A stretch of DNA of 64,000 nt, taken from NCBI GenBank assembly GCA_965644295.1, contig CBFFRP010000290.1, forward strand, positions 43,121 through 107,120. The letters are read 5' to 3'. Below, in pieces: positions 59,101 through 64,000 of the stretch. Below the pieces are notes generated by a model. The model was not told the origin of the DNA. It did no database searches and saw only the letters and a program-made list of their open reading frames with translations. This DNA is from Paraphysomonas bandaiensis (lineage: Eukaryota; Protista; Chrysophyceae). Every line of letters begins with the position of its first letter. The stretch's first letter is position 1. The translations under genes and the position numbers were made by a program.

Positions 59101-60596
59101 CAGCTCCAACTGCACGATAATCATCCACATGATTTTCAAGCCATCTTCACTGATGGTTCTTTTTCACTCGCACTAACCTCTCTCCTGCTCACCTACTAGT
59201 AGGTGATTCCCACACGCAGCCCGCAACGCACAACGGGGGGCAGCAATTGTCTGGCTTCCGCCCAAAACCAACTGGAGCACAGGACTAACCAAAATCCTCC
59301 GACTTACAGCCCCTGAGCATACCCTACCTGGGCTCACCCCATACACCTACGAGACCCTGGCAATATGTCAGCAGCCCTCACGTTCTCTAAACTCATATCC
59401 CCCTCCGTACCTATGTGCACCGACTGCCAAGCAGTACAATCACGAACCACGGAAGCTCTCTCCCGTCGGCGGCGAGCCCTCGGCACAAAACCCCAGGGCA
59501 TCTTTTACGAATGCCTCGCCACAACAGATAATCACCGACAGCGGCCGATCCGATGGGTCCGCTCCCATCCAGAACGCCGAACACAAGATTGGAACAAATG
59601 GAACTACAATGACTACGGCATTTACATAGCTGACGCTGCCGCCAGTGGGGAGTGGTCGACGATAGACAAAATACTAGGCGGCACAAACTACAGCGTGGTC
59701 ACAACTGAGATCACACATCTCATCGACGAATTCTTCACTGCCGGCCAATGGCAATGGAGAAGATATGACAAATTCCTCCACACCGACTGCGGACCCATGC
59801 TCGGGGACGTCACCGAACTCCAACACCAATGGGACCTCCACCAATACATCCTCACGCGGGACGGCACGTACCCCACAAGTGCAACCCGAGACTCGCAGTA
59901 CTGGACACGCAGCGGAACCAGGCTTTTCCACACAAACTTCATCCCCTCAAGACAAATAACTCTCCCAAATGCTATGTCCCATTCCACGACCGCATTCGCG
60001 AAACAGCATACGTGTGGGACAAATCCTACGCGATGGGCAGAAATCGAGCCAAGGGCAAACAAGGAGACGAACTCACAACAGCAGCCAAATGTACAGATTG
60101 CGACCACAACTTGGACATCATGGCGCACATGCTCCTCCAATGCCCACACCCCGAGATCGCCCAAATACGTGAAAAAGCCTTCCACGCACAACAAACTCAG
60201 CTTACCAAACTCCATGAGAAACGACAACCCATCCCCTGGCTACACAATGCCCTACGTAGACACGCGAGGGCTGCTTGGGATCCCGACACACCTCAAGTTG
60301 TGAGATACTGGACCGGCCAACTAACAGCCTCGCAACTGGCTAACGCTTTCGGCCACAACATTTCCACCTCGATACTTGATCACCAGTTCCACAAGCTCGA
60401 AAACTCAGTCACCAAAATCCTGCTCCCTCTCTACAATGGAGGACTAAACATGCTCAAAAACAGAGGCTGTAGGTTTCACAGACTCGACGCGACAACAATG
60501 ACTCCACCCCCGGCTAACGCCAGCAGCTCACAACCACACCGCACACACTCCGCCACCAACCCGACGATCCTTCAGCTACTTAAAGTAACATCCACC
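56136..60596. repeat. Unit 2 of the tandem duplication, cut by a Gypsy insertion
   Basis: Essentially identical to 50334-54795; identity ends at ...ACATCCACC|TGTCACG. Confidence 0.95.
58581..60596 (+). mobile_element. Duplicate of the RNase H LINE fragment
   Basis: ORFs 58603, 59365 and 59829 repeat 52802, 53564 and 54028. Confidence 0.75.
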
Positions 60597-61333
60597 TGTC
60601 ACGCAGCAGTATACACTGCGTGTATTTGTATATAGAATACTGTGCTGTATATAGTGTGTATATATCGTATATATCTGGAGCAGTATATGGTATATATATG
60701 GTATACATATGCATATAGAGGTTGTCATATACAGGGTATATTCACTGTATTTGGGACTTACCTTTATCAGTTTACGACATTCGAGGCTTTCAGTTTAGTA
60801 GCTGAGATACGTTTTTCAGTTTCTGACGGCGATTCACATTTGATTTGGACTGAAGTCCAGAACTTCGAAGTTTTAGTACAAAATACGTGATTTCGTAGAT
60901 AGTCGAAGTTTTCGTATGTGAATATTGGTTTTAGTACGTGAATATTGTTTTTCGAGTGTGAAGTGTTGATCGTAGTGTAGTGTTGATCTACGTTGAACGA
61001 GATGGGTGTTTGCTCATTCTTGTCGCTGACTTTATAATTTACTTTTCTTAAAGAGCACCTACGGTTTGTTAGTGTTTCTGGCAGTGCGCCCGTCGTTGCG
61101 CCCTGGACAGTATCGCAGCCCGCTGGCGGATACTATTTTGGTGGGTTGTAGAGTTTAGACAAGAGATCATCTTTTCTTGGTCCATTCAGAGTTGAGTCAC
61201 GGTTTGTGAGTCATCTGCGGGCACAGAAAAGTTACAGTAATATTACTTAGCTTAGCTTAGCAGTATATTTGTACCAAGTTAATATATATTGAGCCCAAGA
61301 GATAAGTGTGTTTAGTTTTCGTGTGATTGAGCC

Positions 61334-63091
61334 ATGGAGCCTGGAGGCTTCCAAGACATGGTCAACATGTTCAGTCAACAATTTCAGCAGCTAAGGGACG
61401 AGCTTCGGGAGGATATTCAGCAGCAGTTGCAGCAGCAGGAGGAGCGTTCCAAGAAGCAGAATCAACAGCTTCGGGACGATATTCAGCAGCAGTTGCAGGA
61501 GCAGAACCAGCAGCTTCGGGAGGACATGCATCAGCTTAACCAGCAACAGCTAAGGCAGGAGGAGAATTTCAATGAGTTTCGAGTTGAAGTTACTCAACGT
61601 CTTACAGCAGTCGAAGAGATAAGATCTCGGAGGACTTCACCAGCAGCTTCAGTTGTAGGTCTAGATGAAGTGGTACCTCGTGAGGAGGACATATCGAATA
61701 TAATTCATAATGAAGATGCGTCAACTACTTCTAGGGGTATTGAAGTTAATGTAGGACCCATTACTCATCATCATACAGAGCAGTACATTGATCCAGCTCT
61801 ATTGCAGTCACAAATTGAGACAGCTATTCGACAGGGAGTTAGAAATGCCACTCAGAGTATTTTGGAGGAGAGCAGTATAGTGCAACCCCGTCAGGATAAG
61901 AGACAAACGCTACAAACGGTACAGGAAGCGGTTGCTGAAGCAGAGAAGAGGCAAGTCAAGAAGATTATGTTGACAACTGAGGACAAGTCATATAAGAGAA
62001 CGATTTCGCTTTCGGAAATTGATTTAGATAAGTTCATGCGGTTTCTTGAGGATATAGCTGAGTTTGAGAAGTGCAATTATGATCAGCCAATTCCTTCAGT
62101 ATTCATATTGATCAAGGGTCGAGCCAAAGAGACTGTGAAGCATACTTTAATGGGGTTATTTCCTCATGTGTATCCAACTACTTTGAGTTGTAATGATGCT
62201 TCGATAACTGATATAATGTCTGCAGTAAAACATGATATCAGGCCACTGGATGTAGTCGCATTTAATGATATGTTGTTAAAATCTTGCACTGCGTACCAAG
62301 TGTATATGGATAAGTTGGAGGATTTTAAGAGAGTTGATGAGGAGTTATGCATTCTTGAAACAAAGTTTACACAGCGTTATGAATTCTTGGTTGATGCGTG
62401 CAAAAGTAATGGTTTGTATGAAAGTATTCCATTAGTAACAATTAAGAATGGGGGTTCTCTGGAGACTTTCATGAGGTTGATTCCATTTAGCATGAAGGAT
62501 ACTATGAGAAGACTTCTGAAAGTGGAGAATTTTGCCTCTGTACAAGCATTTCTTACTGAGTTCTTTAGTCATTTGAAGATTACGAGAGAGTTAGACGAGA
62601 AGCACCAGCAGTTTAAACGGAGGTTCCGCTTTAATTTTAAGAAGAAAGGGGATGTGAAAACTGTGAATTCAGCAGAAGGAGCAGATGATTTATCTTTTGA
62701 AAGAAGTAGTGATAAGGATAATCCCAGTGAGGAGGAAAACAGTGTCTTAGTTGTGAAAGATATGGAACAGTCACCATGTTATAGACAGATGACTCAGGAA
62801 GGTGGTTGCAAAGAGAAGAATTGTAAATTTTCACATGATAAGGTAATTCTTAATGAAGCTTTTAAGAAGATGGGTTCTCGATTAGGATTCAGTTTGATAC
62901 CAAAACCGTCTTTTAATGCGCCTCCACAGAAGAATCAGTCGTCTAATCCAGGTCATTTTAGGAAAATCCCGGGAACTGGTAAACATCAACCCAAAGTCAA
63001 ATTGTTGAGTCACTTGAGAGCAGAAGCAGATACGGATAGTGGTGGTAGTGGCGAAGAAATTGACTATGATGATAACGATGATGATTTGTGA
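61334..63091 (+). CDS. Gypsy Gag with a Q-rich coiled coil and a CCCH-type finger
   Basis: 585-aa ORF; repeats QLREDIQQQLQ; CYRQMTQEGGCKEKNCKFSH. Confidence 0.8.
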   Translation: MEPGGFQDMVNMFSQQFQQLRDELREDIQQQLQQQEERSKKQNQQLRDDIQQQLQEQNQQLREDMHQLNQQQLRQEENFNEFRVEVTQRLTAVEEIRSRRTSPAASVVGLDEVVPREEDISNIIHNEDASTTSRGIEVNVGPITHHHTEQYIDPALLQSQIETAIRQGVRNATQSILEESSIVQPRQDKRQTLQTVQEAVAEAEKRQVKKIMLTTEDKSYKRTISLSEIDLDKFMRFLEDIAEFEKCNYDQPIPSVFILIKGRAKETVKHTLMGLFPHVYPTTLSCNDASITDIMSAVKHDIRPLDVVAFNDMLLKSCTAYQVYMDKLEDFKRVDEELCILETKFTQRYEFLVDACKSNGLYESIPLVTIKNGGSLETFMRLIPFSMKDTMRRLLKVENFASVQAFLTEFFSHLKITRELDEKHQQFKRRFRFNFKKKGDVKTVNSAEGADDLSFERSSDKDNPSEEENSVLVVKDMEQSPCYRQMTQEGGCKEKNCKFSHDKVILNEAFKKMGSRLGFSLIPKPSFNAPPQKNQSSNPGHFRKIPGTGKHQPKVKLLSHLRAEADTDSGGSGEEIDYDDNDDDL

Positions 63092-64000
63092 CTAGAGGTG
63101 TTAACAGCAGTTGTGAACTTGAATCAATTTTCATGCAAGGAGTTTAGAGCTGCTGCTCATCGTTGTGGTGTCATTGTAAATAGTGATAGTGAAGAGATTG
63201 ATGTCGATATCGTTTTGTTTGATTCGGGTGCCAGTTCGAATAATTTTATATCGGATAAGTTTTACAAGAGATATGAACGTTTTTTGGAAAAGGATGTCAT
63301 TTATAATAAATTAATAGTGAGAGTAGCAAATGGACAGGAGGTAGTCATACCTGGATATGTACCAGTGAAAATTGTATTCAAAGATCATGATAAGGAGTAC
63401 GAAGCATGGGTTAAACTGTATATTTTGAAAGGAATGACAAAGGATATCATTATCGGATTGCCTACAATATGTGAACATTTCAGTGAATTATTTATCAAAA
63501 TGATTAAATCAGCGAGTAATGATTCAAATAATTTGTTGTCTCAGTTGGCAGTTGTTAGTGATGATGTTGAGGAACTGAAGAATTATATTGTGTCCGGTTC
63601 AGTTATACAACCATGGGAGAATCCAGTTAATCAATGTGCTGAGGAGGATGACCTAATACCAGAGCCTTGTAGTTTTGGAGGAATTTTGAATTTTCTGGAA
63701 GTGTCAGTTGCGAAAGCAAGAGAGTTGTATTTGGAAGAAGTGGAGTCTAGAGTTAATTCGGAATTTGCTAGTGCGACTGATGTGGTTCAATTCCTAAAGG
63801 AGGAGGCAATTGATGTGTTTGTGCCCTGTGATTGGAAAGGTATTCAACATGTTAAACCATTGAGATTACAGACCAAGAATAGTATTCCCGATCGTATTAA
63901 GCCCAGGAATATGAGGAGGATTCCACCTGCGTTGTATCAGAAAACTAAGGAGGAGTTTCAGAGAATGAATAAATATTTCTACCGACCAAGCACCAGTCCT
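63092..64000 (+). CDS. Gypsy Pol (protease and start of RT), in frame after the gag TGA; partial
   Basis: Manual translation is open to the window end: LEVLTAVV...VLFDSGASSNNFIS...VRVANG...DIIIGLPTI...KEEFQRMNKYFYRPSTSP. Confidence 0.9.

Follow-up and report, generated by a model that had tools for sequence, protein, structure and literature searches.

Gag and pol of a Ty3/Gypsy retrotransposon that lies at the end of the stretch analysed here are separated by a single in-frame UGA, and we infer that the Gag-Pol protein of this element is very probably made by programmed readthrough of that codon. The stretch, referred to below as the window, consists of 64,000 nucleotides of Paraphysomonas bandaiensis DNA (positions 43121-107120 of contig C290). 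An earlier, sequence-only reading of the window had proposed readthrough at this codon, assisted by two signals of the alphavirus type: the tetranucleotide CUAG directly 3′ of the stop and a stem shortly downstream. The proposal of readthrough is supported by the conservation of the stop among related elements and by the observation that no other frame is open across the junction.

According to this model most ribosomes would terminate at the gag UGA and yield Gag. A minority would decode the UGA by means of a near-cognate tRNA and stay in frame, giving a Gag-Pol fusion that carries the protease, reverse transcriptase (RT)/RNase H and integrase, and the size of this minority would set a low ratio of Pol to Gag. 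In the family to which the window copy belongs the stop would be read in UGA-CUAG, the most readthrough-prone context known, and an unusually stable hairpin of 16 positions located 13 nt past the stop would probably raise the efficiency.

The gag-pol junction and the complete copy of the element

Translation of the window showed that the gag frame continues past the TGA for 303 open codons up to position 64000, and that this open region includes the protease motif LFDSGAS. No Met codon is present between the gag stop and the protease active site. Together with the list of open reading frames (ORFs), these results confirm the junction as it had originally been described: a TGA directly followed by CTAG, a frame that stays open through the protease, and no Met before its active site. 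The two alternative frames are closed at the junction, at 4 and 25 codons. Because a single conserved in-frame stop is thus combined with a pol that has no initiator before the protease and with closed alternative frames, readthrough would be the simplest route to Gag-Pol. The features of the element that are present in the window are as follows.

60597-61236, + strand: 5′ LTR (long terminal repeat) of 640 bp with TGT...ACA termini; ~98.5% match to both LTRs of the complete copy on contig C186
61334-63091, + strand: gag ORF of 585 aa, TGA terminator included; from the ORF list
62777-62836, + strand: C-X9-C-X4-C-X3-H zinc-finger motif in gag; found with a regular expression on the translation, with a weak zf-CCCH_3 match (E 0.032)
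63089-63091, + strand: TGA terminator of gag, the proposed readthrough codon; kept in all copies and in the sister families
63092-63095, + strand: CTAG directly 3′ of the stop, a leaky-stop context; read from the sequence and the same in the 99-100% identical copies
63092-64000, + strand: start of pol, with the protease (DSG at 63221-63229) and the beginning of RT, cut by the contig end; from the translation, with a weak RVP_2 match
63105-63120, + strand: 5′ arm of the 16-position stem; from sequence and fold, with no substitutions in the diverged copy on contig C410
63140-63155, + strand: 3′ arm of the stem; from sequence and fold, with 63147 G>A as the sole variant seen

Contig C290 terminates within the element. 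A complete copy is located on contig C186 (locus L028, minus strand), and has a gag of 564 aa, the TGA and a pol of 1314 aa in one frame, the pol terminator being TAA-T. The difference between the gag of this copy and that of the window (564 versus 585 aa) results from an in-frame difference in repeat length near the N-terminus. Pfam matches in the C186 pol are RVP_2 (weak; residues 41-127), RVT_1 (322-469), RT_RNaseH (565-671), Integrase_H2C2 (776-827) and rve (859-938). This order of protease, RT, RNase H and integrase, together with the LTR features, identifies the element as a Ty3/Gypsy (Metaviridae) LTR retrotransposon; a domain search detected no chromodomain in it. Among the 1879 gag and pol codons of the C186 copy there is one TGA, that of the junction, and there are 19 TGG codons. 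The single in-frame TGA indicates that TGA is not a general sense codon in the element.

The two LTRs of the C186 copy differ by one mismatch over ~646 positions, the copy is flanked by a 4-bp target-site duplication (ACAC), and the polypurine tract GGAAGGAAAAAGAGGG directly precedes its 3′ LTR. With an 801-bp junction probe, the copies on contigs C301, C290 (the window) and C186 were 100% identical and that on C93 was 99% identical; the copy on C410 is older, rearranged and ~94-95% identical. Near-identical LTRs, a target-site duplication and dispersed copies of 99-100% identity indicate that the form bearing the stop transposed recently.

Conservation of the in-frame stop

None of the copies or relatives checked has a sense codon at the position of TGA 63089-63091. 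Contigs from three other samples span the junction and leave positions 63089-63095 unchanged, and the older C410 copy retains the TGA. Sister families were identified by a protein search of the genome with the N-terminus of pol, after which their junctions were cut out. All four of these families (B, C, D and E; 52-59% identity over the pol N-terminus) have a TGA at the homologous place, where it follows a conserved ..DD/E-L; their gag frames are open for more than 490 codons upstream and are in frame with pol. In more distant families of the genome, at 42% and 38% identity, the pol frames are open for 1313-1335 aa and none is fused to gag, which implies that in each of them a stop lies shortly before the protease.

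Alignments over the junction were obtained with 113 database relatives; single-ORF gag-pol fusions account for 67 of them and the remaining 46 begin at pol. The DNA of ten pol-only relatives from other samples was examined. One of them (L060) corresponds to family E, and the other nine were scored as external relatives. All nine contain an in-frame stop at the junction (four TGA and five TAG), and eight have a gag ORF upstream in the same frame; in the ninth, L064, the contig begins 28 bases before the stop. The junctions are TGA-GCAG, TGA-GCAT, TGA-CTAG (L065), TGA-CGGG (L069) and, in five cases, TAG-G. Scans of metagenome contigs with a single protein as query and with an alignment of four sequences yielded no further relatives. 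The stretch itself was found in marine and seawater metagenomes and in several organisms.

The five relatives with UAG form a subgroup with features of its own. Behind their stops (L063:1684, L064:29, L066:2468, L067:1410 and L068:2240) the sequence continues with G and purines (GGA or GAG). A hairpin begins 1-2 nt past the stop codon, with an inner stem that reads GAGGAG/CUCCUC in some members and AGGGAG/CUCUCC in others. The overall stability of the folding windows at these stops is not unusual.

The CTAG tetranucleotide (63092-63095) is identical in the copies of 99-100% identity and in the contigs from the three other samples, and the external relative L065 has TGA-CTAG independently. Judged from all junctions compared, including those of the sister families that are considered below, CUAG is a feature at the level of the family and not of the lineage.

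A hairpin downstream of the stop

The stem is formed by CAGCAGTTGTGAACTT (63105-63120) and GAGTTTAGAGCTGCTG (63140-63155), which pair at 15 of 16 positions, three of them G-U, and leave a single G/G mismatch (63113/63147). A spacer of 13 nt separates it from the stop and its loop is 19 nt. Position, spacing and pairing are therefore as had been claimed from the letters of the window, and the predicted minimum-free-energy fold, which was computed for structures free of pseudoknots, is dominated by the stem. An A/U-rich 8-bp match between the loop and sequence downstream of the stem was noticed by eye.

The 90 nt that start at the stop have a folding energy of -25.7 kcal/mol, the lowest of 358 equal windows over gag and pol of the element, and this value is below that of 98.7% of 300 synonymous-codon recodings of the same peptide (p ~0.013). 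Dinucleotide shuffles of a 77-nt stretch gave z = -1.8, and 8 of 200 shuffled sequences folded equally well. The stem is real, and moderately though not overwhelmingly unlikely to arise by chance.

Substitutions in this region spare the paired bases. All five of those in the C410 copy fall outside them, and the change 63147 G>A, present in C410 and in a minority contig of run X4, affects the unpaired G/G position and is the sole variant found here in other samples. Hairpins centred on the same codons are present in families B-E, at spacers of 15-17 nt. In families B-D 98.6% of the cells are paired, and two compensatory pairs occur with G-U intermediates.

Among the external relatives, L069 has a pronounced structure at the corresponding place: of all 90-nt windows of that element, the one behind its TGA-CGGG (L069:2310-2400) is the most stable (-37.5 kcal/mol, versus a mean of -22).

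Evidence against the model and alternative explanations

Several observations weigh against readthrough as set out above, or against the signals assigned to it. The near-identical copies do not count as independent evidence that the stop is conserved. The tetranucleotide that follows the TGA in the sister families is ACAT, GCAC or TCGG, so that the +4 base is A, G or T, and in the C410 copy it is CAAG instead of CTAG. In the sister families the pairing register of the hairpin is shifted by 3, and the hairpins are of ordinary stability (14-45th percentile of windows). A covariation signal as good as the one found was obtained in 80 of 500 shuffles, with five sequences only. Of the nine external relatives scored, L069 alone has exceptional structure after the stop, and seven of the ten distinct external relatives have nothing unusual there. 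The 13-nt spacer exceeds the 6-12 nt reported for stimulatory stems (PMC3159437). With respect to RNA, no run recorded as RNA contains the stretch, and in the one run guessed to be RNA no contig spans the stop by 31 nt on both sides. The proposal of alphavirus-style signals thus stands for the family of the window copy, in which both UGA-CUAG and the stem are found, but it does not extend to the sister families or to C410, where CTAG is not kept. Likewise, the covariation that the sequence-only reading had called for is present as two compensatory pairs, but in view of the shuffles the covariation of the stem among the sister families is only suggestive.

These results bear most directly on the hairpin. 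Readthrough might well take place with the UGA and its immediate context alone setting the efficiency, the hairpin being either a chance product of Ala-Ala codons (GCA-GC / GCT-GC) on both arms or a structure with another role, such as RNA packaging, dimerisation or stability. We regard this as a substantial possibility, somewhat short of an even chance. It would fit with the retention of the stop in sister and external families that lack an unusually stable structure, with the difference in register between the window family and families B-D, with a spacer longer than in the characterised cases, and with a shuffle z of only -1.8. On the other hand, the 90-nt segment with the lowest energy of all 358 is situated exactly downstream of the stop and folds more stably than nearly all synonymous recodings, the substitutions in C410 and in other samples avoid the paired bases, and families B-E have hairpins on the same codons with the compensatory changes mentioned. 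We put the chance that the stem acts as a stimulator at roughly even, or a little better. A route to Pol other than readthrough, namely internal initiation, reinitiation downstream of gag, or translation of an RNA from which splicing or editing has removed the stop, seems improbable. In its favour, a Met occurs 8-13 codons past the stop in some of the sister and external families. However, the window family has no Met before the protease active site and the downstream Met is not conserved across families, inspection revealed no GT...AG pair around the stop that is common to the families, and the contigs have no joint at the junction. Moreover, gag and pol are always in the same frame, a property that is relevant only if ribosomes cross the stop. 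We also considered a tiny intron over the stop (GT at 63088-63089, AG within 20 nt), but rejected it, since its length would be ~20 nt and a GT is missing there in the sister families.

Decoding of the UGA as selenocysteine is very unlikely. The host genome does contain one tRNA-Sec candidate above the Rfam threshold (69.6 bits; C339:26360-26445), and the UGA of the junction is the only in-frame UGA of the element. Nevertheless, a search of the full copy with its LTR, at a threshold as lenient as E 1, gave no selenocysteine insertion sequence (SECIS) and no other Rfam family, and five external relatives have UAG at the junction, which selenocysteine decoding cannot serve. A last reading regards the copies as dead and the stop as the nonsense mutation that disabled them. 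In its favour, the copies with exactly this junction are 99-100% identical and would hence represent one lineage. The presence of a stop at the homologous place in all four sister families and all nine external relatives, the intactness of both ORFs across the 1879 codons, and the recent transposition indicated by near-identical LTRs and multiple dispersed copies argue against it. A private nonsense mutation, which had been named as the observation that would overturn readthrough, appears on these comparisons to be effectively refuted. Programmed readthrough of the UGA is the reading that we retain, and it has good comparative support.

Comparison with known readthrough systems

Readthrough of a gag UGA into pol is already documented in Ty3/Gypsy elements (Tj1, Tosmo and Tcry), and the present element reveals no new mechanism. 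Transposition of Tj1 of Schizosaccharomyces japonicus, a Ty3/Gypsy element, needs the gag UGA and is abolished by removal of the stop (PMC4600332). The 8-nt sequence GAA-TGA-CT is conserved in Tj1, Tosmo1-3 and Tcry1 and has been read as programmed readthrough (PMC10085805). The background assumed in the sequence-only reading, that Ty3/Gypsy elements usually use frameshifting or a single ORF, thus understates what is known for these elements (PMC4600332, PMC10085805). The element described here resembles them in layout: gag and pol share one frame, a single TGA is followed by CT, and pol has no AUG of its own. It differs in its host, a marine silicifying protist rather than fission yeast, in the codon before the stop, which is Leu and not GAA, in the presence of a stable 3′ hairpin, and in that no chromodomain was detected.

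A second parallel is with the gammaretrovirus murine leukaemia virus (MuLV), in which gag and pol are likewise divided by an in-frame stop, the Gag-Pol fusion arises by readthrough of this UAG, and an RNA structure 3′ of it stimulates the process (PMC3159437, PMC5009743). MuLV has UAG, a purine-rich spacer of 8 nt and a compact pseudoknot, whereas the present junction has UGA-CUAG, a spacer of 13 nt and a simple predicted hairpin. The UAG-G context of the external relatives L063, L064 and L066-L068 is MuLV-like.

Stimulation of UGA readthrough by stems 3′ of the stop is known from alphaviruses, plant viruses and fly genes (PMC3159437). The spacers of known stimulatory stems are 6-12 nt, and Firth et al. 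describe stems that are 10-14 bp long and have spacers of 8-12 nt (PMC3159437). Following Loughran 2014, PMC10085805 cites CUAG as a readthrough motif. The alphavirus nsP3-nsP4 junction and mammalian UGA-CUAG genes share with the window element a UGA followed by C or CUAG and, further downstream, a stem of 10 bp or more that is interrupted by one base. The loops closed by the alphavirus stems measure 100-150 nt; in the present element the loop is 19 nt, the spacer is slightly longer, and CUAG is not conserved among the sister families.

An in-frame gag/pol stop is also ascribed to Tca2 of Candida albicans (Ty1/copia) and Skipper of Dictyostelium, in PMC10085805, which cites Matthews 1997, Forbes 2007 and Leng 1998. 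So described, both are LTR retrotransposons that resemble the window element in having an in-frame stop between gag and pol. Tca2, which has a pseudoknot, belongs to a different superfamily from the window element.

Host and wider implications

Several full-length silicon-transporter genes are present in the genome (on C348, C406, C398, C150 and others), and no match to light-harvesting complex (LHC) proteins or PsbO was found in it. This combination hints at a non-photosynthetic (heterotrophic), silicifying protist.

It is conceivable, though doubtful, that UGA termination is permissive throughout this host, either because release factors respond weakly or because a near-cognate or suppressor tRNA is abundant. 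Such permissiveness would explain why an in-frame UGA is found in each of the five Gypsy families examined, with all four bases represented at +4, and why the genome contains further families with an unfused pol of 1313-1335 aa when 67 of the 113 database relatives are fused. If it exists, the genome would offer a natural set of cases in which to work out, within a single cellular background, how readthrough is tuned by context and 3′ structure.

Independently of permissive termination, the element would add a well-documented Ty3/Gypsy case of gag-UGA-pol in a marine protist lineage distant from both fission yeast and vertebrates. Across this genome and the marine samples, a large clade of Gypsy elements keeps the in-frame stop while the downstream sequence and local RNA structure vary freely, and it provides a natural panel of stop contexts for readthrough studies. 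In genome annotation, elements of this kind should not be called two genes or pseudogenes.

Further features of gag, the LTR region and individual copies

A search of the gag ORF against Pfam gave no family above threshold, and an Atlas feature search with gag gave gag-like and zf-CCCH leads, which were weak only. The finger at 62777-62836 is of the CCCH type and takes the place of the usual CCHC knuckle. This segment is the only part of gag that is matched by the sister families at the DNA level (~79%). Near the N-terminus of gag (61380-61540) there is a Gln-rich repeat whose length differs among copies and samples, throughout by multiples of three; the window copy and C186 differ by 63 nt, and the sample contigs skip 33, 45 or 78 nt.

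The sequence that follows the 5′ LTR, where a primer-binding site would be expected, does not start with TGG, and self-priming like that of Tf1 is possible for this element. No tRNA genes were found within the window. Directly upstream of the LTR (59365-60635) there are overlapping ORFs of 312 and 268 aa, for which a Pfam search gave no family; given these ORFs, the element may have inserted into another repeat.

Two copies show rearrangements. On C410 (61600-64900; L005, L006 and L023) an inverted fragment of LTR and gag joins the pol part at the position corresponding to window 63088, the base before the TGA, and ~566 bp are inserted after the position matching window 63173. On C186 (2261-7235; L021) the 3′ LTR of the complete copy is broken by two perfect tandem copies of a ~2.48-kb unit, which could be an insertion that was later duplicated or an assembly artefact. 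These units have a 7-bp overlap with LTR sequence.

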